Source: Ostrea edulis
Taxonomy: Eukaryota
Direction: 5' to 3'
Length of the DNA: 64,000 bases
Assembly (NCBI RefSeq): GCF_947568905.1
Contig: NC_079168.1
Coordinates: forward strand, 18,166,001 to 18,230,000
The notes below the pieces were generated by a model, which searched no databases, had not been told where the DNA came from, and saw only the letters and a list, made by a program, of their open reading frames with translations. Each line of letters begins with the position of its first letter. Position 1 is the stretch's first letter. Of the stretch, positions 563-27,781 are shown piece after piece. The position numbers and the translations under genes are program-made.

Positions 563-3133
563 CTACGTGCGAAGAAGTGCCATGGACGGTTCCCGAAGTT
601 TTAAACATTGTAAACATTCAGAAAATCGACAGCAAAGGAACTCTTCTTCTTCATCATCATCGTTGCATCCTATAAGAAGGAAAACAACAACAACTTCATC
701 TTTCTCAGCGTCGTAGTAGCAGATTGCCGAGCCGCTGTCGCCTTGCTGAAGTTTGAATTTTTTGTCCCCATCTTCATAACGAATTGTATCGCTTCTTCTA
801 AACTGAGAGCCGCTTGTTCCTGTCCGTGAATCCTCCATTTCAGATTCGGATGAGCTACTGTCAATTTTTTCATATGTTTCTCCATTGTATGCGACAAAAA
901 CCGGACGAAGATTTGAAGTTTTGTATAAATATAATTTTTTGTCATAGAGGTTTTGGTAATTGCCGTTAAATACTCTCAAGTTGGACGTTTTTCCAAAAGG
1001 ATGATACAGCCTTTGGCGCAATTCTACTTCTGAATGAGAAGAAACTTTAATCGCTGTAAAATCATTAAATGCTCCTGTAATATCATCAGATGGTTCTATG
1101 GTATAACGTTTTTTGGATTTTCCTATGAATTGCTTCTCAGTTGTATAAACCCTTTCTTCCGGGGGTGCGACATGTGAGCATGTGAATATATATTTTGCAC
1201 TCTTGGAGTCCTCGCCGAATACACACCCTATTCCCTTTCCCAAATCGCCCCGACTGTTCTTTTTAATGCATATTGTGCATCCAGATTCTAGAGTTTTCAT
1301 AAATATTATACCTTTTACCGATGGAACAATTTTGAGATTTCCTTTGAACTCGGGCCACATTTCTTTCAAAAGCTTGTCTACTTGATCTTTAAAGAATTGG
1401 CTCCTCTGAATGTGTGCTGTGTTTTTCACTTTGATGGTGAATGTTTGAGAAGTCTTTTTTATGGAGCGGATTTCTTCAAATCTGACAAGACATGAAAATC
1501 AAATGAAAGAGATCATGACTAGAAGATGTAAATCTGCTTTCTGTTCATAAGAAAAGCAGATACTTATAAAAGATATCTATAATATCATTTTACCACGGAA
1601 TAGCAGGTACAAATAGTATTCTATTATTATTATTATTTTTATTCTGCATTCATAATATTTTTTCTGTATTGTTATTTGGGAAGAGGGACTGTGGCGTCTT
1701 TTTTCCAAATAACTATCTTAAAATGTGAGTGGGTAATGGGGAATCCTCACCCATGTTAAAAATAAATTTAAGCTTTATAATGAATTTTGAATTTAAATTA
1801 TATTTTGTTTGAAACTAACCTTTCAAGAGCTAGCTGTATTTCGAAAGGGATTTGTTCTGTAAGCATGTTCTCTTGTTGCTTGATAGCGCGTTGAAGTCCA
1901 TCAATTGCTGTTTTGACTTCGTTGGCTTTTCTTGCAGTTTTCTCATTCCAATCCATACAGAAGCTTTCCTCAAAAGAATTCATCATTAGCCCTACAGCCT
2001 TGTCGTCGATGAAGTCCGACAGAACAAACTTCAAAGGCCACAAAGAAGATGGTCGCCTGTTTTTCACGATACGTTTAACATGTTTTCTAATTTTGTATTC
2101 TGGTCCATACAATGGAATTTCATGCTTTGGGAAGGCAAACAAATCGTCCGACACAATGGATGTTATGTGTCCAACCAAAGCTTGGTTTACTTCTTTGGCT
2201 AATGTAGATGCGATTGTTTGAATTACTCTGTCCAAGTTTTGATCATCTGGTAATAATTGTAGGAAACGGAAATTTATCAGCTCTTCATTACTTCTGTAAT
2301 GAGAGAGAATGATTTTCCCATCATCTCCAATACACCAATTTTGAATTCGTTTCCTGCTATTATCAATAGACTTCCGAACAAAGGTTATCGTGGCATTGGC
2401 CTTTCTGACGAATTGCTTCTCAAGTAATCTCGAAAACCGACCAGTGATTCCATTTTTACCCTGAATTAAAACTCTAGCTATTAGCTTCTTGTCTACATCA
2501 TTCATGATAAGCCCGATGTTTTCAGCAAACGTCTTTCGGACAGCATACAGTTCACTTTCTGATGTAGCATCAATATCGATGTCATGTAGACCAAGGATGT
2601 AAACAATGTTTTCCAAGTTCTCTAAACTACATGCACCACTAAGGCTAGTTAGAAGCATGGACGACTGAAATGAAAAACACTAATTTTTGAATCACAGTTT
2701 TGTATTTATGATGATGGTACGTGATTGAAGAGTTACTTACATCGTTACACATTTGAAGAGCAAGTCCATTTGGTTGAATTCTACAAGCCTTGACAACCAC
2801 CACATACATTTGCGGAACATACTGCCCTTTGAAATATGAATCGTTGATGACTTGTTGAAGTCCGTGAGAATTTACACATCCTTCTTTTTCAACTCGCCTT
2901 TTATCCAATAAAGAGTCATAATGCTTTTCATAATCTTTATCAAGACTGAGAAAGATAGCATTAGGAGGTTGTAGAAGCGTCCTGAAAGTTTCATAAACCG
3001 TTTTTCCAAAAGTTGACTTGTGAGATTGTATTATTTCCTCAAAAGGTTGTTGAAGAATTTTCAATCTTGGTAAATATTCCCATGGAAGTAAAACGTTCGA
3101 ATACCAAATATGTATACAGTCCAAGGAATCCAT
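563..3133 (-). CDS. 3-exon gene, 718 aa: ~410 aa helical N-terminal region plus C-terminal trypsin-fold (PA clan, Nal1/alpha-lytic-like) serine protease. Exons 3133-2741, 2664-1820, 1481-563
   Basis: Three long ORFs join in frame at canonical sites: GAT|GTAAGT..tttCAG|TCG (phase 0) and AG|GTTAGT..tgtCAG|A (phase 2). Catalytic motifs FTCSHV (His), NDFTAI (Asp), GDSGS (Ser). Start AAAAATGG at 3133 chosen by alignment with the paralog. Confidence 0.85.
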
Positions 3134-3494
3134 TTTTAAATAGAAAAAGGGGATTTTTACATAAGGAATACCCTTCTTTGTGTAAACGAAGATTTTAAAT
3201 GCATTATGCACACTAACGTCTAGGCAGACACGTGTGACTTGTAACCAGTTGCAGTGAAGTGCTTATCATTGCCATCCGTTACCTACTCTCTACATTGTAT
3301 ACCCAATACCTTGATTTTTGGAGATAATGCAGTTTTACTTAGTACAAATCGGGTTTGTAAACGTGTGTTACCTTGAATACGTCATACCTATCGGTTGGCG
3401 AAAAAAATATGACCCACTTTTTTGTGCACTGAACATTTTCATGGGAGGGCACTTTTTAAAATTGTTGTTTTAACTATTTGTTTGTATGCATGTA

Positions 3495-3630
3495 TGTTGT
3501 TTTAACAGCTACATTTGTTTGTTTTAATGTTGTTTTAACAGCTACATTTGTTTGTTTTAATGTTGTTTTAATAGCTACATTTGTTTGTTTCAAAGGTGTT
3601 TCAACTGTTACGTTTGTGTGTTTTTAACAA
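3495..3630. repeat. 33-bp minisatellite, 3 clean copies plus a degenerate one
   Basis: Unit tgttgttttaacagctacatttgtttgttttaa starts at 3495, 3528 and 3561. Confidence 0.85.
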
Positions 3631-3880
3631 CGACCTACATGTACAAGGTTACCAGTTGCACATTCACGGGCCTTTTTCCGCCCCGGAAGTGCAATTGATA
3701 AGATCAATTCTTGCTTTTTGAGAACTCAATATTTTTAAATCTAGAAAAGTTTAATAGAAAAAGTATGTAAGCCATGCAGACTACGTTCATTGTCACAGCT
3801 TTTGTGTTTTCCCATCAATTAATGTTAATATTGATAATAATGTTCCCATCAAAAAATGTTAATATAGCCCCATTCTCTCT

Positions 3881-5041
3881 TTTTAGGTCACCTGCGAAAA
3901 ATCCGTACTCGTGCATTAACAAATGCATACATAGTGATGTAGAGCAGGAAGGCCTCTACCAAAATTGTAAATTTCATGATCCCCGGGATAGAGGTTCTGA
4001 CCCCAGGGCGGGGCCAAACTTGGTATATATAGTGTGTATGTGTAAAACACTTAAATAACATATTTAGTGCTATTGATTCTAAATTGAAAATAAATGGATG
4101 TTTAGAAAGAATAAATAGTCCTTCCCCAAAATTTTAAATTTGATGATCCCAGGGGTAGGGATTTTGGTATTAGGGTGGGGCCAAAATGGTCAAATATTAA
4201 ATGTGTGAACAATACACATTTTTAACTTCTTCTTGATAAGTGACATTTCAATTCCTTTCAATTTTGGTATGAAACATATTTGGGACAAGGGGGACATACA
4301 TAGTAGATTTCAGGACTCCTGCACACCAGGGGCCTTGGGGGCGAGGCAGAAACTGCCTAAAATGATAAATTTTTAAATATCTTCTATATAAATCATGCAC
4401 ACGTCACCAAAATTGTAAATTTTATGATCCCAGGGGTAGGATTATGATATCAGAGGGGACCAAAATGGTCAGTTATTGAATATGCGAGCAATAGAACATT
4501 ATTAACTTCTTCTTGATAAGTAACATTCGAATTCCTTTCAAATTTGGTATGAAGCATCTTTGGGGCAAGAGGGACGTAAATTGTAAACTTCAGGATTCCT
4601 GCACTCCCGGGGCCTAAGGGACGGGGCAAAAACTGACAAAAATTGAATTTTCAAAAATCTTCTCTGCAATCACACATGTGTAAGAAAAGTTAAATGCATA
4701 CACAGGCACTCGACGTATTAAATAGCTATAATAAAAAAAAAAAATCTCTTCCTGTATGTCTACAGGAAGCCAAGTTTTTAAAATTATAGATATTTAACAC
4801 GTCCAGTGCCTGTGAATGCTTAGTGTTGTAGAGTAAGAGGGCCGCTTCAACACTTGTAAATTTTATGATCCCCGGAGTAGGGGTTCTGAACCCAGGATGG
4901 GGCCAAAACTTAGTATTATATAGTATGAATGTGTAAAACATTTAAATGATATCTTGATACTGAATTGAAACTAGATATCTAGAAGGAATAGGTCGACCTT
5001 TACCAATACTCAGGTGACCGATAAGGCCTGTGCGCCTCTTG
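3881..5041 (+). mobile_element. Non-autonomous Helentron-associated (HINE-like) element with internal ~170-bp satellite-like repeats
   Basis: 5' ttttaggtcacctg and 3' caggtgacc subterminal inverted repeats, a terminal ggcctgtgcgcc hairpin, and a recurring aaattgtaaatttcatgatcccc..ggggccaaa unit. Confidence 0.7.
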
Positions 5042-5779
5042 ATGTATATAGCCTCTCTCTTTTTCCTCTCTCTAAAAATAATAACACAAATCGCACTTTT
5101 CAACCATTTAATCATAGTTGTATAGATCTGAAAGTAAAACTGCAATCATTAGGTAAAATTGCAATAATATCAACCCTTGATTTTATGATAGTGCACTGGT
5201 AGAATAGATCTAGAAAAGGGGTATATGTGGTGCAAAGAGAAAAACACCACATTACATATAATTTCTCTTTAATTTAGAATAAAATAATATCAATTAACTT
5301 GGTGCAGAGATTTGTTTGCTAGCAAGCAGACATACTTATAATTCAATTCACTCAAGCAACAATACAAATAATTGATGGTTCTACATTTCTTCCAAACCGA
5401 GAAAGTGTATTATTCCTATTTTCTTCTTTGTACCAATTTAAAATGCATTTTAATACTTTCAAGAGACTTCGATGCACACATGTTTGTGTTCATGTTGCTG
5501 GCGATGTTAATGATTTTCTCTCTCCAGCATTCCCAGGAACCTTGTCAGATACATGTACTTGAGTCCACTTGTCATATCATTTTGTCCACTTGTCAGTTAA
5601 ACGAAATTTTAAAGTTTAAATAAATTGAAATAAAAATGCTCGATTACTGCCTTCCAATTATCGGCAATTTTTTCTGACAATCCGCCAAGCATGATCTGAC
5701 AATTAACATACTAGTAATTATCAGACAAGTGGGAGGCAGAAATATGACACCATAATACGTCTTTACTCGTTTCAAATTT

Positions 5780-5796
5780 AATATATATAATATATA

Positions 5797-5836
<40 letters not shown>
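5780..5836. repeat. (AT)n microsatellite
   Basis: Direct reading of the sequence. Confidence 0.95.
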
Positions 5837-5840
<4 letters not shown>

Positions 5841-6478
5841 AGGTGAAGATAACGAACAGTGATCAATCTCATAACTCCTATAAGCAATACAAAATAGATA
5901 GTTGGGCAAACACGGACCCCTGGACACACCAGAGGTGGGATCAGGTGCCTAGGAGGAGTAAGCATCCCCTGTTGACCGGTCACACCCGCCGTGAGCCCTC
6001 TATCCTGATCAGGTAAACGGAGTTATCCGCAGTCAAAATCAGTGTGCCAAGAACGGCTTAGCAATCGGTATGAAACACGTCAGACAGCATTTGACCCAAT
6101 GCGAGGTTGTATTGACGAACTAGATCGTTATAACGACCATAGAATTTGCGAAATGCTGACTTCAATCGAGACTGTTGAAATCCCTGTACCATCAACTTGT
6201 TTGTCAGTAGCTTACCTCGATTTAAAAACTGACTATACAAAGAAAAAGCTCTTGCATATCGAATCAGTTGAGATATATAAACACCATATGCAGGTGATAA
6301 TGGAATATTGCTACACAAATATTGGAAGTTGACGATGGAGAAGCTGAAATCATCCCGTTTGTCATACAGTTGAGTTGTCAGTTTGCCGTTAATGTCTACT
6401 TTCAATAAAATATCTAAGTATGAAGCAGAAGTGGACGACTCTTTGGTGTCCTTTATTTCGAGCTCACGGGGATATATC
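5837..6478 (-). mobile_element. 5'-truncated Penelope-like retroelement (RT C-terminus plus 3' terminal repeat)
   Basis: ORF 6058-6480 (IYPRELEIKDT..LYDKRDDFSFSIVN..YGVYISQLIRYARA) matches the fragments at 12.8 kb and 23.5 kb. The same terminal repeat recurs many times in the window. Confidence 0.8.
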
Positions 6479-6491
6479 ATATATATATATT

Positions 6492-8999
6492 CTATAAAGG
6501 AAGTATATTGATATGATAGTCGGCTCTATTCTTTAGACAAACGATTCCTTCATGTAGCCTACAACAAACAAACCCATCGTCATATTCTCCGACGATTAAA
6601 AACACGACACTTATGACGTTTCTTTCTTCGTCGAAACAGCATACGGCGGATCCACTGTCGCCTGGACGAATTTGTCTGGTGATATGTGTTGGTATTACAA
6701 CGTCAATTCTCCGAAATGGAAAACGATTTTCACTGCTTTGAACAGATTCCATTGAATGTTCTTCATCACAGTCCTCGTATTTTAACAACGTTTCACCAAC
6801 GTACTTAAGAAAAATCGGGTCATCTTCACCTCTCCTATGAAAGTAGAGACCGGTACTTTCCTTCTGCAGCACAGAAAAGTCTCCATCGAACAATGTTACC
6901 CCAGGAGTGCCAGTAAAAGATATTGGTGATCTTAAATCTTGCCTTGCCGTTAATGGTGGGTCGATAGGAACCGCAGCGAAGTCTAATAATCCTACAACAC
7001 ACTCATCATCTGTCGTGATGCACAGGTCTTTTACAGAACGTCCTACAACATTCTTTTCGTTATCATACATCGTAAAGCCCGGGGGTGCCACATGAGCGCA
7101 TGTTATAGCAAACTGAACGGCTTCCGCCATGTCGCCGATCACTCCAGCTACTCCGCGTTTGTATTTTCCTTTCAGATGAAAACCTATCGTTCCACCGGAT
7201 TCAAACGTAGCAAAGAATGTTATTTTTTTCGCAAATGGTTCCAAAATAAAATCATTTGCTTCAAATTCTTTCCAATCCCTCAGCAGCTCTTGGATTTCAG
7301 TTTTCAAGGAAGTTTTGTCGCGTGAATATTCTGCTCTTGAAATACCAATGACCAGGGTATCATCTCTTTTCTTTATTGATGAGACATGCTTCAGTCTAAA
7401 AAAAAAAAAAAAGAAGATAATTTGATAAAAGAATTAAAATTTCGTTCAAATGTGCAGCTTCCCATAAAAAATATTCAGGTTTTACAATATCTTTGCTATA
7501 TCTTACCTCCACAAATAAATCTGCAATTCATAAGGAATGTCTTCTCTCAGATATGTCGTTTGATCACGGATGACGTCAGACAGAGTGTCAAGTTCGTGAA
7601 TTAAGTTTTGATACTGATTCTCTGCCTTACACATTTGCTTCCGTATATACTGCACTACTAAAGGTAGGGAAGAAGGATCCAGAATTTCTGAAAGGGTAAT
7701 ACTTTCATTTCGTGACTTTTTGAACCACAATTTATGTGCAATCATGTCAAAAAAGCAACAACGTTCCCCAGTTAATTCAGGTTCACTGATTTCAAATCCA
7801 AAGCTCTGTTCTATCGCATTGCGTACTTCATCTTTCACAGTTGTCGCAATATCCATGCTGATTGTGTTTACCTTTCCATCTCTGTTTTCTGTCACTATTT
7901 TGTGTAGTTTATGGTTCACTTTATCCTCTCTCTCCTGGACAATTCTCATAACCTGCTGAGCACACGAATCGCAATCCCAAACAGTTATCTGATTATGATT
8001 GTTTTGTGCATCTTGTCGGAGACAGCTAGACATTGTGGAAAAAGAATCACGAAACGATTTCTCCAGTAATCTTGAGCATCGTTCTTTGATGCCCTTCTCT
8101 CCTTTGAAAAAGATTCTTGAGGGTAAATGCTTGTCATCGTCGCTAATTGCATTTCTTACAAGACTGGTGATAGTTCGATGGTCATTTTGGCCGTGGTTTT
8201 CTATTGAGGCAGAATCATATACACAGTTCACTATATACACAATTGGGAATGTAGAAATTTCTCTAGTGCCCAGAGAAACTTTCAAATGCTTCAAAAGATT
8301 GAGGCTCTGAAAGTAGATTAAATGTAATTCTGTGAATGGCATACAGTTTTGACATTTTCTGAGTCAGACCAGTTCTAATTCTACAATGTAATCAATCCCT
8401 ATAGTTAAAAAATTCAAGTATCCTAAAACTGATTACTAGGCTGTGTTTTATCTTATAGCGACGAGGAACTGACCCACGACAAGCTTAAATTGTACATCGA
8501 TACCACCTACACACCTTTTAACGGAAAAGTAGTACACATGAATGTAAACATTATCGGTGTGAAGTGCACCGTGATATGATGCATTTAAAATGTCCGTATT
8601 CATGATAAATAATACATATTTAAAAAAAATCATAATTACCTGTGTTGAGAGTTCAATCTTGGCTGCTCTCTTTGCGAAATTTAATGCGACCAAATACATG
8701 TGGGGTACAGCAGAATGATTCATCTCCTCCATGACACACCACAATTTGTCTCCATCAATATCACAGCTCGCGATTCTTTCTGAGAGAGAATCAATGTATT
8801 CTCTGTTGTTCCCGCTGCTACAGAAAAAGAGAACCGGGTTCTCAATAGGTCCCAGAAGGGCATCATATGCCCACTTTGGAAGAAACTCTTGACAAAGATG
8901 TAATTTATCCCTGTAAGTATCCTGCAGTCTCTTCAGCCGCGGATAACACGAACTCAGTATCTCGGTCTTCGAAATGTTGGCTTTGATCTGCGAACTCAT
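6492..8999 (-). CDS. 3-exon paralog of 563-3133, 687 aa: helical N-terminal region plus trypsin-fold serine protease. Exons 8999-8640, 8306-7507, 7395-6492
   Basis: In-frame splicing at CAG|GTAATT..tttCAG|AGC (phase 0) and AG|GTAAGA..tttTAG|A (phase 2), the same phases as the first paralog. Motifs ITCAHV, LDFAAV, GDSGS. Shared motifs YPRLK, VPHMY/VPQMY, IVYI, SRLLEK, IP(Y/F)E(L/I)Q. Confidence 0.85.
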
Positions 9000-11095: not shown

Positions 11096-12061
11096 CACAG
11101 GACCTGAAGTATGGATATTACTACCCCCCCCCATTTTTTCATAATTTTTTTTTTGGTGGCAATAATTTCTCTGAAATGTATGAATTCCCAGTCTATCTCA
11201 TCCCTCTTTCGATTCATGTAATCGTTTCACGCTTTTTGTAAGCTTTAAAGATTGGCCTTCTACCGGTATAATAAAATACACAAGGTAAGAAACAAAAATT
11301 TGTAAACAAACAGGGGGTCCCCGTTTCCGGGCACATTTTCCAAGTAATTACAGCGTTACCTAAGGAATTTTGACGAGCGGCAGGTCGGGGAGATGTCATA
11401 CTACAAGTCTCTTCAACTCAAAACCCATCTCATCTCTTTTATTTGACACAATCTTGCGTGCATTGATCGGACAGGGCTTCATCTCTTCCACTGGCAGCCA
11501 AAAAGGAGGTCACAGAGTACGAATTTGTTGTACACGCCGTGTGATTGGTTCGCAAAGGCATTGCTTAGTCTCGGGATCATCCGAAGGGTCTCGGGATTAT
11601 TCGCGGACCAATCACACGACACGTTATAAATTCGTACTCTGTGACCTCCTTTTTGGCTGCCAGTGGAAGAGATGAAGCCCTGTCCGATCAATGCACGCAA
11701 GATTGTGTCAAATAAAAGAGATGAGATGGGTTTTGAGTTGAAGAGACTTGTAGTATGACATCTCCCCGACCTGCTGCTCGTCAAAATTCCTTAGGTAACG
11801 CTGTAATTACTTTGGAAAATGTGCCCGGAAACGGGGACCCCCTGTTTGTTTACAAATTTTTGTTTCTTACCTTGTGTATTTTATTATACCGGTAGAAGGC
11901 CAATCTTTAAAGCTTACAAAAAGCGTGAAACGATTACATGAATCGAAAGAGGGATGAGATAGACTGGGAATTCATACATTTCAGAGAAATTATTGCCACC
12001 AAAAAAAAAATTATGAAAAAAAGGGGGGGGGGTAGTAATATCCATACTTCAGGTGCCTGTG
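11096..12061. mobile_element. 966-bp foldback/MITE-like DNA element, almost entirely one inverted repeat
   Basis: Arms ~11096-11552 and ~11603-12061 are near-perfect reverse complements. Ends CACAGG..CCTGTG. 8-bp target-site duplication acagtgaa/acagtgta. Confidence 0.9.
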
Positions 12062-18184: not shown

Positions 18185-21100
18185 ATTACTTACAGTTTTG
18201 AATTGGAATGTCAGAGGAATTATGTCCTCTAGTGTATCTTTGACAAATCTTTTACGTTTATCTGACTGTGATATTGCTGTAATCTCAGAATACAAGTTAC
18301 CCGAATAATGTTCTAAATTCTTTGGTTGTATTGATAAGAATTATATAAGTGCAGCAAAATTTGAAAAATCGGACAAAAATGATGAAATAGGCAAAGGAGG
18401 TGTAGCAATATTATACAAAAATTCCTTAGAATTTTACACATCTTCAGTTTACACTAACTCCAACAGAGTTGTTGGTATCTGTTTAAAAACTCCAAATCAT
18501 GTTCCATTATATGTTTTTGGTGTGTATTTACCGTCTGAAAACAATGTTGATCAATATAGAGAAGTGTTGAATATACTTAACGGATTATTCACTAATTACT
18601 CAAATCATGGTCATGTAATTTTTGCTGGTGACATGAATGGAAGCATACTACAAAAAGATGCTGACAGGACAAATATTTATAAATCAGCTGAACTTACAAA
18701 TTTTGTCAGGAAAAACAACATGTATTGTGATGTTACTAGTAGTAAGAAAAACCAATGTCAAGATGTTTATACATTTGTACCTTGTAAAACCATGTTAGAT
18801 TATATATTTGTTAGTGAATCCCTACAAAATCGTATTTTAGATTATGCAATTATAGAAGAAGGTATAATATCTAGCACCTCAGACCACTTACCTATAATAG
18901 TTAAGATTGAAGTTTTGGAAAACCCACACACATTATTACCAAACACATCTAAATGGCCTGCGTGGCACAGAATATGCACAGATACAAAGATCCAAGTACT
19001 GTAACCAGCTGAAAAAAGACTTAAACCATATACTGCTCGATGAGAACAACATGTCGTCTGTAAATGATATAAATACATATTCAACAGAAATTGTTAACGC
19101 TGTGATAAAAAGTGCCAAACTAACTATTCCCATGTGTTCATATAATCCTCATACCAAACCTTATTGGAATACCTCAGTAAAGAATCTCATAAGAACGAAA
19201 TGGAACTTAGAGTCAAATGGGTAAAAGAAGGAAGACCTCGGGGTATGCAGCACATATCGTATGCTGAGTACAGGTTGTATAAACATGCAAAACGCCATTT
19301 CCGACGATGTCAAGAAAGCGCCTCCCAGGACTTTATTCGAAAAACGTACGAAGATATCGACAACGCTGCAGGAATCGACATTCGATTGTTTTGGAAATAA
19401 ATTCGTCGACAAAAACCACGTCAAACAAAGTTATATCCAGAAATACAGTTTGCCGAAAGAGTAGGAAATACACCTGAAAGTGTCGCTTCAGTTTTTGCTG
19501 AATACTTCTCAACTGTGTACGAGCCCGGACAAAATGAAATGTATGACAATCAATTTTACAACAATACCATTCGACAATACAATCGCATCAAAATACAAGA
19601 AAATCAAAATTCTGCCGATCTTCCAGGTGGATATATTACAGAAAAGGAAGTAGTTGATTCTATAACACTATTAAAATTTAAAAAAAAAGCCCCTGGGCCC
19701 GACAAAATTCAATCGGAACATTTGATTCATGGAAAATGTGTATTATCAAAATATTTATGTGTATTATTCAACAGCATAATAAAACTAGGTAAAATCCCCT
19801 CTGGATGGAAACAAGGTTTTATAGTACCAATTTTCAAGGGTGGAAACAAACAAAAAACTTCTCCTGACAGCTACCGACCCATTTCATTATTGTCTACTAT
19901 ATTCAAAGTTTTTGAAAAAATCATCTACACAAGGATTATGAACGTAACATTCAAAGAGAAATACCCGAGTCCTCAACAACAAGGTTTTCATAAAGGTTTA
20001 AGTACTATCACAGCTGCATTTAACCTTCAAGAAACAATCTTACATCACATTGAAAACGGATCACGTGTATATGCATGTTTTCTAGACAGCCGAATAGCCT
20101 TTGATACAGTATGGAGAAAAGGATTGCTTTGTAAAGTTAACGAAATAGGTATCAAGGGAAAATTATGGACATTGATAGACGACTGCCATATCGATACCAA
20201 AAGTGCTGTAATTGTAAATTACCAACAATCAGACTGGTTCCCGGTTGAACAAGGAATACGGCAAGGCGGTGTCTTATCTGGATTTTATACACAGTTTATA
20301 TCAATGACTTACTTAACGAACTTGGTCACATCAATAAAAACTTCGGAATTCATAATATAGAGTCATCGACCTCTGCGAGATATTGCCTGTTTATCGTCAA
20401 CTCCGCACTCACTCCAGAATATGTTGGATGTAGCATACACTTATTCTTGTAGATGGAGATTCTCTTTCAACGCTAAAAAATCATGTATTATAGTATTCGG
20501 TAAATCTCACAATGTCGTCTCAAATCAATGGTTAGTGGGCGATGAAATCATTCCTGTAAAGAGTGACTACAATCACCTTGGGATCATTCAAAACTCTCAT
20601 TTCAAATCTCTAACCAGGACAAAGGAGGCATGTGACAAAGGCAGACGATCTTATTACTCCATAAAACACTTATCTTTAGAAAATTCCAATCCAGTTACTC
20701 TTGTGAATCTTTATAAAAAGGTAGTCCTACCTTCTACATTATATGGATGTGAAATTTGGAATGATCTTAAAACCCAGGATCTTCAGATGTTGCGTCGACT
20801 TCAACATTTTATCGTTAAAGATATTCAAAGCTTAAATCTATCAACACGGTCCGATATGTGTGAAAGCTTATTAGGTCTCAGACCTATCATATCTGGAATT
20901 GATAAAAGGAAACTGTTGTTTTTAGGAAAACTGTGCAATTTCTCTCACAATGTGCTGGCGAAACAAATACTTCTCTTCAGACTCTTTACATTTTTGTGTA
21001 ACCCATGGGAAACCACGCACGGATTCATTAAAGACATTCTAGTCATTCTGGATAAGTACTCCTTGACGCAATACCTTGCATCTTACTTGGAATCTGGTGC

Positions 21101-22460
21101 CTTCCCAAACAAATATACCTGAAAAAACACACTGTAAAATCCTCTATTTCTCTTTACGAAGATTGTGAATGGAATAAACGAACATATCTTGACTCAGACT
21201 TTACGCGATTTATACAGTTACATGATGGAAAGGGGTTGCCAAGAATTTGGAAAATCATATGGTCGACACAAGAAACCAAAATTATTAAAACCTTAGTTAA
21301 ACTCTGGACAATACCTCCCATGAGAAACATATATACATGCCAACTTTGTAACTCCCAATATAATGATATGTTTAAACACATTGCCTGCAGTTGTCCCAAC
21401 TTTTCCTCAAACAGAGAACAATTTTGGGACGATATTACAAACCTTGATCTGTGTGTCTGTGCAGAATTCTGTGCCCTTGATGAAGAAGATTTATATACAT
21501 ATATGTTAGGTAAAGCCCCAATTTATCCACTGTCAGAACAGAAGGAAAAAAAGTTACTACTTATATGTGGGAATTATTTAATTAAAGTTTTTGCTATATA
21601 CAAAAGGTGCATATGAATTTCAACTAAAAGTTAGTATACAATAAGTTCCTTTTATATCACATTTCCTTTCTTTTTTATTCATTTACATTTAATTATGTAA
21701 TGGTAGTTTTTTCTTCTTCTTTGTTCTCACATTTTCATATTTGTACATATGTTGTATGATTCATCCCTAATATAATATATATATTTGATATACTCTCTGC
21801 AAAGAGGAATAAAATATTGAATGAATGAAAAAATCCCATATTCTAAAAGAGACAGAGAACCTCGGTCATTCAATTGCCGACATAACTTCATCTCTATTAT
21901 GAATTCTGTCAAAGATTATCCCAGACGACGGGCTAAATATGAAAAAGAAGAACTTGATACATTGTCAGAATGGATTAAAAGTATAAGAGGAATATTAAAA
22001 TCCCGCATTAAACATATTTAACAAAAGTACGTTCCAACTATCCTTCTGTGTTTAGTAAACCAAAAGTGAAAAAAGAATTAGATAGGTTACATGAGGAATA
22101 TATTTTGGTTCCAGCTGACAAAGCTTGTAACAACATTGTCTTTGTTTGTAAGGTTCATTATTACAACTGTATTTTAAACGAACTTGGCATTAACTCCACT
22201 TTTGGTAATCGTACTTATACTCCAACTGCCCTTCCAAAAGATGACATTCTTCAAAACCATGCTTCAGTTTTAGGCACATTTGGTATTCCTGTCGGTGGGT
22301 CGAATGAATGAGTTACCGTACCTATACTGGATTCCTAAACTACATAAAAACCCATACAAACAAAGATACATCGCTGGATCCAGTAAGTGCTCTACCAAGC
22401 CCCTATCTTTGCTCCTCACGAAAATATTAACAGCTGTGAAGGAAAAACTTCAAACTTACT

Positions 22461-26644: not shown

Positions 26645-27781
26645 TCATGGCTTTATAAATAGTTCTTTGACAGTCAGTCTGAACTGCTTATTATAGATGA
26701 GATAAATTATTGGATTTGTTGCATTGTTTATACAATATGTCTTCACCAGAACTTCATAAAACGCCCTGCTTGTAGGTGAAAGATCTTCAATATTTACAAC
26801 TGAGCTTTTCAGAAGTATCTGACTAAGAAGATAAGGGAGGTAACTAAAAAGAAACGACAGCGTCACTGCAGAAAGAATGACGGTGGTTTTGGTCAGTTGA
26901 GCTTTCCGATGAAGTTTCGAATGACTGCTCCATTGAATCTCGTTCAGCATCACGTGATCACAGTCTCGAGAAATTGAAAACAGAGATGAAGACCTCCTGA
27001 CTTCGTATATTGTTAGGCTGTCTCGCGTGCAGGTTCCCTGAGAACTAAGTGAATCTCCGCTATCAATTCGAGGTATGTTTGTATTTTGTATCTGAGAACG
27101 TTTCCACTGCCAAATTCGCTTAAAGACTCTTAAGTATAAGAAAAACATAATGCAGAATGAAGTCACGAACACGGTTAAAAGAAATCCGTAAAAAAGGCCT
27201 ACAAACATGGAAAATTGGACATCATCTGCTATTGCGCATGTGCTGCCTACAAGTCCGGGTATGCAATTATTTTTAACTGTGCTTTTACCATAAATGCATG
27301 CTGACGTCCAGGAAATGACAATTGCAGTGGTTATGAGAATCAACACTCTTATTTTTGGATTGGCGTTTGAATACGGTATGGGCGAGCATATTTTTTGGTA
27401 TCTGTCTAAAGCAATGCACATCAACATTAATCCCTCACAAGCGTATGTCAGCATTGAAACACTTCTGAAGACTCGACAGAGTATATCATTGTCGAACAGC
27501 ACCGGGTTTCCTATCACATATATCTCAAAGGGAATGCTGAGACAACAGCAGGCAAGATCAAAAATAGCCAGCCAGAGAATATAAGTGTTGGCTGTTGTTC
27601 GCTTAAATTTCATGCCATATGCATACACTACAAAACCATTTCCGATCACACCAACAAACATTATTAGTCCAGAAAATATCATGGCAGCAATGTTATAAGC
27701 AGCAATGTGATAATTCCACATCCACAATAGCAATTGTCTCTCAAATCCTAGAGTTGCATTGGTTGTATTTTTGCATTCCAT
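26645..27781 (-). CDS. Intronless class A (rhodopsin-like) GPCR, peptide-receptor-like orphan, 378 aa
   Basis: Seven hydrophobic segments. GN in TM1, LAIFD in TM2, C in TM3, IALDRY, FLFSYLP in TM6, NNATNPIIY in TM7. N-terminal N-glycosylation sequons NTT and NAT. Confidence 0.95.
   Translation of the reverse strand: MECKNTTNATLGFERQLLLWMWNYHIAAYNIAAMIFSGLIMFVGVIGNGFVVYAYGMKFKRTTANTYILWLAIFDLACCCLSIPFEIYVIGNPVLFDNDILCRVFRSVSMLTYACEGLMLMCIALDRYQKICSPIPYSNANPKIRVLILITTAIVISWTSACIYGKSTVKNNCIPGLVGSTCAIADDVQFSMFVGLFYGFLLTVFVTSFCIMFFLYLRVFKRIWQWKRSQIQNTNIPRIDSGDSLSSQGTCTRDSLTIYEVRRSSSLFSISRDCDHVMLNEIQWSSHSKLHRKAQLTKTTVILSAVTLSFLFSYLPYLLSQILLKSSVVNIEDLSPTSRAFYEVLVKTYCINNATNPIIYLIYNKQFRLTVKELFIKP

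Follow-up and report, generated by a model that had tools for sequence, protein, structure and literature searches.

A 64,000-nucleotide stretch of the Ostrea edulis genome (NC_079168.1, positions 18,166,001 to 18,230,000; here called the window, in which all positions are counted) carries two paralogous three-exon genes on its minus strand, gene A (563-3133) and gene B (6492-8999). Each is predicted to encode an N-terminal module followed by a putative serine protease. An earlier note on this DNA, made from the letters alone, concerned positions 1820-8999, a span bounded by the gene B start codon on one side and by the last nucleotide of gene A exon 2 on the other, and proposed that the module is a dead dynamin-like protein (DLP) scaffold; the strings that it quoted lie on the minus strand where it had placed them. 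Here, we report the gene models, the predicted structures and the searches that bear on this proposal.

The gene models were drawn from open reading frames (ORFs) and splice sites. The GT-AG introns of the two genes fall at the same positions and in the same phases (first intron, phase 0; second intron, phase 2), and the splice donor of gene B exon 1 is CAG/GTAATT. Between the paralogs, identity is 24% over exons 1 and 2 (E values, 0.004 for exon 1 and 2e-16 for exon 2) and reaches 33% over exon 3 (E, 3e-45); on sequence grounds, the duplication is old. The conceptual product of gene A equals NCBI XP_048732017.2 (718 residues; P0006) letter for letter, a record annotated as "uncharacterized protein LOC125648972 [Ostrea edulis]." No protein record for gene B was found among the collections searched; its predicted product has 687 residues, the length of the Saccostrea cucullata ortholog XP_062612707.1 (P0003), to which it is ~58% identical. 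P0006 (for gene A) and P0003 (for gene B) served as full-length stand-ins, and the gene B exons were used separately.

A 1,435-nucleotide spliced contig from a public run, representing a relative ~96% identical, maps to 9098-8644, 8310-7507, and 7390-7249 and omits exactly 333 nucleotides at gene B intron 1. In the contig, 5 letters separate its piece at 7249-7390 from 7507, and gene B exon 3 therefore starts at 7395. Because this contig carries both junctions, the gene B model corresponds to a real spliced transcript, and transcription and splicing are shown for gene B's close relative. Between gene B and this relative, exons 1 and 2 differ by 19 synonymous and 16 nonsynonymous codons (rough ratio of nonsynonymous to synonymous rates [dN/dS], ~0.27), and the relative's contig has an in-frame 3-nucleotide deletion at 8015. 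This pattern indicates that the N-terminal module is under purifying but not strict selection, evolving fairly fast while its frame stays open. The products of both genes lack a signal peptide, and no hydrophobic or membrane segment was found in them (maximum Kyte-Doolittle 19-residue mean, 1.1 to 1.7), so the protein is probably cytosolic.

All three proteins (gene A, gene B, and Saccostrea) carry the invariant C-terminal motifs TC[ACS]HV, DF.A, and GDSGSA, at spacings of 37 and 109 residues; by the order and spacing of these motifs, the domain is a probable chymotrypsin-fold (PA-clan) serine protease.

Relatives were sought with sequence and profile methods. No Pfam, NCBIfam, or PADLOC profile matched any exon or full-length protein above the noise level (E up to 10 for Pfam), and PDB sequences searched with phmmer and a family profile gave no match for the N-terminal module or the protease, the profile bringing up no DLP at E up to 10. 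Among 1.84 billion representative proteins, the exon 2 profile recovered the gene itself, the Saccostrea ortholog, and one 243-residue fragment; the two other hits (P0004 and P0005), both from bacteria, were rejected as compositional, being K/E-rich surface-repeat proteins matched in 7 to 8 repeated stretches. When P0003, P0006, and the protease region were used as queries in word searches, nothing beyond the query itself came back (for P0006, not even that). Profile searches for further copies in the oyster genome (an 895-Mb assembly, with the window on contig C5) yielded only the two paralogs, and a search of the ESM Atlas by features gave no usable match. As far as sequence can tell, the family occurs in oysters only, and O. 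edulis has two copies. Scanned in six frames with Pfam Dynamin_N (PF00350; E up to 1e-3), the complete oyster genome gave 37 places, none of them inside the window, and the family hidden Markov model run against the oyster's own Dynamin_N loci reached a best E of 0.16, which is noise.

Predicted structure of the N-terminal module

AlphaFold2 (AF2) models were made without templates from a family alignment of 5 rows from 3 to 4 genes. The model of P0003 (residues 1 to 440; predicted local distance difference test [pLDDT], 71.5; predicted template-modeling score [pTM], 0.59) has a helix at 16-31, strand β1 at 52-56, a poorly modeled α1 (61-64 and 78-89), a β2/β3 hairpin at 97-112, α2, β4 at 137-141, α3, β5 at 177-180, ~200 residues of long helices, and a hairpin/helix unit at 391-425. 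The model of paralog A (P0006 residues 1 to 465, 22% identical to P0003; pLDDT, 66.9; pTM, 0.57) shows the same order of elements. In both, β1-α1-β2/β3 hairpin-α2-β4-α3-β5 is followed by a helical bundle that takes in the N-terminal helix, and the α/β domain comprises ~140 to 150 residues (about 49-185) and five strands. The order β1-α1-β2-β3-α2-β4-α3-β5-α4, with a consecutive β2-β3 hairpin, is that of TRAFAC-class GTPases, whereas flavodoxin-like folds alternate strand and helix throughout; the topology was read here from element order. The P-loop-like α/β core that would be expected of a DLP is thus present in the models of both paralog lineages. A homodimer prediction of the module, run without controls, scored 0.00 and is evidence neither way.

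No GxxxxGK[ST], conserved DxxG, or [NT]KxD motif was found by motif search in the N-terminal ~400 residues of gene A, gene B, or the Saccostrea ortholog. The site at which the earlier note had guessed a P-loop without GKS proved to be the β1-loop-α1 of the models, and GKS is indeed absent from it: the loop after β1 reads NTRSN, SSGNN (gene B), or LDKDY (gene A), and there is no G1 P-loop. The G3 DxxG and G4 [NT]KxD motifs are missing at the ends of β3 and β5. An NKxD motif would follow β5 in a GTPase fold; the string IVYIVNCVYD, taken previously for G4, was rejected in this role, being β4 in the models and not β5 (RIFF) and not being kept in paralog A (IVYILGLHDID). What does follow β5 is [KQ]G[EK][KN]G, the beginning of the best-conserved block of the module ([KQ]G[EK][KN]G...R.SR[IL]LEK.F), which is a plausible hinge because it is placed where the G-like domain meets the first long helix. 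Gene A alone has FGKT (2999-3010, minus strand) within HKSTFGKTVYETF, upstream of β1, which resembles one half of a Walker A motif. We do not regard it as a displaced P-loop, since it lies before β1, within a predicted helix, and neither gene B nor Saccostrea has it; it is probably due to chance.

Structural relatives of the P0003 model were sought with Foldseek against the PDB, where the top four matches were chains of Campylobacter jejuni DLP (E, 1.8e-3 to 7e-3; probability up to 0.87), with further matches to dynamin, DRP1, MxA/B, IniA, SynDLP, BDLP, Sey1p, IIGP1, and GIMAP7. VIA-align (library of 48,161 representative chains) matched residues ~13/48-202 to small TRAFAC GTPases (Arl2, Z 9.1; YsxC, Z 9.0, 146 residues aligned at 4.3 Å; SelB, Z 8.5; HflX, Z 8.2; LRRK1 ROC; FeoB; EngA), and residues ~12-370 to DLPs (BDLP, Z 8.1 to 8.2, 218 to 256 aligned; LeoA, Z 8.0; EHD4). 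A second look with the same aligner gave MFN2 (Z 8.2, 265 aligned), MFN1, Mgm1, Fzo1, the GTPase-bundle signaling element (GTPase-BSE) of Drp1, and OPA1.

With the paralog A model, the top Foldseek matches were SynDLP, BDLP, CmDnm1, and CjDLP (E, 0.03 to 0.07), and in the second look ranks 1 to 8 all went to the dynamin superfamily. The best match was MFN2 (Z 9.8; 271 residues within model 22-397 aligned to chain 27-756); other DLPs were CjDLP (Z 8.9), BDLP (Z 8.8), LeoA (Z 8.4; 200 aligned, 4.4 Å), the minimal GTPase domain (MGD) of SynDLP (Z 8.0), and dynamin-1 (Z 7.7). In a library of viral predicted proteins, giant-virus dynamin-family proteins made up 9 of the 50 top matches. The longest and usually the top structural matches are DLPs, notably the core of G domain plus helical bundle 1 (HB1) of mitofusin/BDLP, and across three libraries the best or longest matches are dynamin-superfamily proteins, as the earlier proposal had it, and not an unrelated fold.

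In the ESM Atlas, the nearest shape was a cluster of 69 hypothetical proteins, all from molluscs (650 residues and no Pfam family for the representative), which matched the module with a template-modeling (TM) score of 0.50 (Atlas model) or 0.46 (AF2 model) over 264 to 285 aligned residues. By their models, these 69 proteins may be a wider family of the same architecture, beyond the reach of sequence searches. Next after this cluster, for the alignment-free Atlas model of P0003, came MnmE/TrmE GTPases with a helical domain (TM, 0.39 to 0.42). Separately, the linker unit between module and protease (gene B, 7249-7390; P0003, 391-440) matches the cytosolic C-terminal domain of ZnT/YiiP zinc transporters (Z ~6 to 7, ~60 residues, 2.2 to 3.0 Å), probably as a common small α/β unit.

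Dynamin-like proteins and competing explanations

Weight comes from convergence: two sequences 22% identical, two predictors, two aligners, and three libraries lead to a GTPase-type domain plus a bundle that includes the N-terminal helix. We therefore regard a GTPase-like domain with a helical bundle at the N-terminus as probable, on the strength of these models. That the module is specifically DLP-like, a nucleotide-dead minimal scaffold regulating the C-terminal protease, is given a probability of roughly 0.5. The dead DLP scaffold that had been proposed is partly supported: the motifs are absent and the models are DLP-like in shape, but a clean statistic (best Foldseek E, 1.8e-3; TM, ~0.2) and a link to Dynamin_N by sequence or profile did not emerge.

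Several results weigh against the DLP reading. No Foldseek match reaches an E of 1e-3, and TM scores of ~0.1 to 0.2 with global root mean square deviations (rmsd) of 5 to 25 Å mean that only parts superpose, although a large whole-chain rmsd is expected when a hinge separates two parts. The Z scores of 8 to 10 are at or just above the tool's background (7 to 8, and higher for helical models); flavodoxin-like and TIR folds score only ~1 Z lower, and in a wide search with paralog A, generic four-helix bundles tie DLPs in Z, with far shorter alignments. The models are of moderate confidence (pLDDT, 67 to 72) from a shallow alignment, with the α1 and β5 regions poorly modeled. Their α/β domain of ~140 to 150 residues is Ras-sized, unlike the ~300-residue large G domain of dynamins, and no second stalk bundle, paddle, or membrane-binding element is seen in them. 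Neither sequence nor profile searches linked the module to Dynamin_N, MMR_HSR1, or a chain in the PDB. The protease, too, was identified by its motifs, with Pfam, NCBIfam, and PDB sequences giving no match.

Among known systems, mitofusin/BDLP-type DLPs (truncated MFN1/2 constructs, Nostoc punctiforme BDLP, C. jejuni DLP1/2, LeoA, and SynDLP) resemble the predicted models in their minimal unit of G domain plus HB1 (neck), and this bundle-plus-domain unit aligns over 200 to 271 residues, in models of moderate confidence and at Z 8.1 to 9.8, near background. The alignments to MFN2, BDLP, and CjDLP take in model residues ~13-400 and reach both ends of the target chains. The oyster module differs in having no G1 to G4 motifs, no Dynamin_N match, and a G-like domain of half the size; where DLPs have a second bundle, paddle, or transmembrane part, none is seen here, and a putative protease follows instead.

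A precedent in kind is fungal Mmc1, a dynamin-related protein (DRP)-like pseudoenzyme with lost GTP-binding residues and a BDLP-like predicted fold, proposed to be a self-associating scaffold and not a motor (bioRxiv 10.1101/2023.10.03.560745). Mmc1 and the oyster module have in common a DRP/BDLP-like predicted fold and the loss of all GTP-binding residues, but Mmc1 is detectable by HHpred against BDLP/MFN1, is mitochondrial, has C-terminal membrane segments, is widespread in fungi, and has no attached enzyme domain (bioRxiv 10.1101/2023.10.03.560745). For DSTYK, which the earlier note had offered as a precedent with an N-terminal DLP-like module upstream of a kinase, no supporting paper was found in the literature searched, and that precedent is unverified.

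The best-placed alternative, which we hold to be unlikely, is a degenerate TRAFAC-type GTPase-like domain with a helical domain that does not derive from DLPs, being of MnmE/Era/EngB-like or septin/GIMAP-like lineage or convergent; the DLP matches would then reflect merely a G domain next to a helical bundle. MnmE/TrmE (an MMR_HSR1 G domain set in a helical domain) and EngB/YsxC are the best matches for the α/β domain alone (Z 8.7 to 9.0; TM 0.39 to 0.42 with the Atlas model), which scores highest against small GTPases (YsxC/EngB and, at Z 9.1, Arl2) and not against DLPs; the Atlas model lies nearest MnmE/TrmE, and the Ras-like size and the want of a stalk/HB2 or paddle agree with such an origin. 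MnmE/TrmE and EngB/YsxC are active GTPases with full motifs, other flanking domains, and no protease. DLPs align longest (218 to 271 residues, with the N-terminal helix and the post-domain helices included), occupy ranks 1 to 8 for paralog A and Foldseek ranks 1 to 4 for P0003, and lead in the viral library as well, all of which argues against this alternative.

Less likely still is an ordinary flavodoxin/Rossmann/TIR-like three-layer domain with a generic four-helix bundle, whose likeness to GTPases and DLPs would be coincidental. TIR (Z 7.8), flavin mononucleotide-binding flavodoxin-like (Z 6.8 to 7.0), CheY-like, AbiH, and ParA/CbiA clusters occur among the matches, four-helix bundles head the wide list for paralog A, and no GTPase motif is left; yet GTPases are more numerous and higher ranked in every list, the predicted β2-β3 hairpin is foreign to flavodoxin-like folds, and three libraries and two predictors agree on a GTPase plus a helical domain. 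Least likely of all is that the alignment was too shallow for reliable models and that the true N-terminal fold is different or partly disordered, in which case the models would say nothing about structure. Although the alignment has only 5 rows, pLDDT is 67 to 72 and pTM 0.57 to 0.59 with several segments below 50, and the ESMFold2 chain pLDDT fell below 50 in at least one run of complex prediction, the two 22%-identical sequences give the same element order and the same hit family, and the alignment-free Atlas model agrees on a GTPase plus a helical domain.

Feature coordinates and surroundings

Table 1 lists the features of both genes; where a basis is named, it is the evidence that placed the feature.

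TABLE 1 Features of gene A and gene B, by position in the window
Gene	Feature	Position(s)	Strand	Basis
B	Exons 1, 2, and 3	8999-8640, 8306-7507, 7395-6492	-	ORF and splice sites
B	Exon 1, 120 residues	8640-8999	-	ORF, splice donor, spliced contig, alignment to P0003 model
B	N-terminal helix (YPRLKRLQ...)	8892-8945	-	Aligned to P0003 model
B	Strand β1 (VLFFC), within NPVLFFCSSGNNREYIDSL of exon 1	8820-8834	-	Aligned to P0003 model
B	P-loop-equivalent loop SSGNN, without GKS	8805-8819	-	Aligned to P0003 model
B	β2/β3 hairpin	8649-8699	-	Aligned to P0003 model
B	Exon 2, 266 codons + 2 nucleotides (α2, β4, α3, β5, then helical bundle)	7507-8306	-	
B	β4 (IVYIV, start of IVYIVNCVYD)	8229-8243 and on	-	
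B	β5 (RIFF, of RIFFKG)	8106-8117 and on	-	
B	Most conserved block, KGEKGIKERCSRLLEKSF	8052-8105	-	
B	End of helical bundle, IPYELQIYLW	7509-7538	-	
B	Exon 3, 300 residues + stop (small β-hairpin/helix linker, then putative protease)	6492-7395	-	
B	Putative protease motif, His (TCAHV)	7089-7103	-	
B	Putative protease motif, Asp (LLDFAAV)	6969-6989	-	
B	Putative protease motif, Ser (GDSGSA)	6645-6662	-	
A	Exons 1, 2, and 3	3133-2741, 2664-1820, 1481-563	-	ORF and splice sites
A	Exon 1, 131 residues	2741-3133	-	
A	N-terminal helix	3020-3073	-	
A	β1 (AIFLS), within PPNAIFLSLDKDYEKHYDSLL of exon 1	2945-2959	-	
A	P-loop-equivalent loop LDKDY	2930-2944	-	
A	β2/β3 hairpin	2750-2809	-	
A	Exon 2, 281 codons + 2 nucleotides	1820-2664	-	
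A	β4 (IVYILG)	2590-2607	-	
A	β5 equivalent (RVLI)	2464-2475	-	
A	Conserved block, QGKNGITGRFSRLLEKQF	2410-2463	-	
A	End of helical bundle, IPFEIQLALE	1822-1851	-	
A	Exon 3, 305 residues + stop (linker and putative serine protease)	563-1481	-	
A	Putative protease motif TCSHV	1169-1183	-	
A	Putative protease motif FNDFTAI	1049-1069	-	
A	Putative protease motif GDSGSA	725-742	-	

The interval between the paralogs (3300-6490) is repeat rich and includes a TA-type microsatellite read as IYIYIY ORFs (e.g., 5644-5983); a 140-residue ORF at 6058-6480 has no Pfam match. In every run, contig depth at 6400-6490 increases by a factor of at least several hundred, which places a high-copy repeat directly at the 3' end of gene B. 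At 11370-11784, two 101-residue ORFs on opposite strands share their first ~50 residues (MTSxRSGRCHTTSLFNSKPISS...), so the region is a ~400-bp inverted duplication, probably a repeat element. Farther on, the plus strand carries the remnant of a retrotransposon without long terminal repeats (18522-21122; Exo_endo_phos_2, E 6.6e-9; RVT_1, E 2.7e-18), and the minus strand carries an intronless 378-residue ORF for a rhodopsin-family G protein-coupled receptor (26645-27781; 7tm_1, E 5.2e-28). Elsewhere in the oyster genome, clusters of Dynamin_N exons lie at 28.79 to 28.98 and 53.19 to 53.36 Mb of contig C8 and at 65.19 to 65.24 Mb of contig C7 (loci L014-L020), a pattern suggesting that large-GTPase genes have expanded in tandem; none of these clusters is near the window.

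A possible nucleotide-independent scaffold

In the mechanism that we propose, residues 1 to ~390 would form a minimal dynamin-like module, made of the N-terminal helix, a Ras-sized GTPase-type α/β domain, and long helices that would form a bundle together with the N-terminal helix, like the G domain plus HB1/neck of mitofusin/BDLP. With all nucleotide-binding motifs lost, it would be a class-I-type pseudo-GTPase unable to cycle on GTP; because it has no P-loop, the module cannot be a GTP switch. Most likely, its role would be that of a scaffold or hinge, independent of nucleotide, by which the putative protease is held, positioned, or oligomerized, and assembly or a binding event would control proteolysis. 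The fold here is a prediction from models, and the function is what we infer from it.

A bolder version, which we consider doubtful, is that, in one animal lineage, a DLP/mitofusin-like core was turned into a nucleotide-independent assembly or hinge module gating an intracellular serine protease. This would be a DLP pseudoenzyme coupled to an effector, possibly a fast-evolving immune or stress sensor of oysters, and the tip of a larger mollusc family hidden from sequence searches, namely the 69-member Atlas cluster of similar shape.

DLPs are known as GTP-driven membrane remodelers. We know of no DLP pseudoenzyme fused to a protease, and to our knowledge pseudoenzyme versions have been recognized only recently (Mmc1). 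Nothing similar to the pseudo-GTPase plus protease architecture was found among the 1.8 billion representatives searched, in keeping with the earlier suggestion of a new domain architecture, and it would be an unusual combination. If the predicted fold fails, genes A and B would be lineage-restricted orphan proteases. If it holds, the core of G domain and helical bundle would be reusable, free of nucleotide, as a scaffold that regulates an enzyme, and in Ostrea edulis, an oyster of commercial and ecological importance, two "uncharacterized" genes would gain a testable function.

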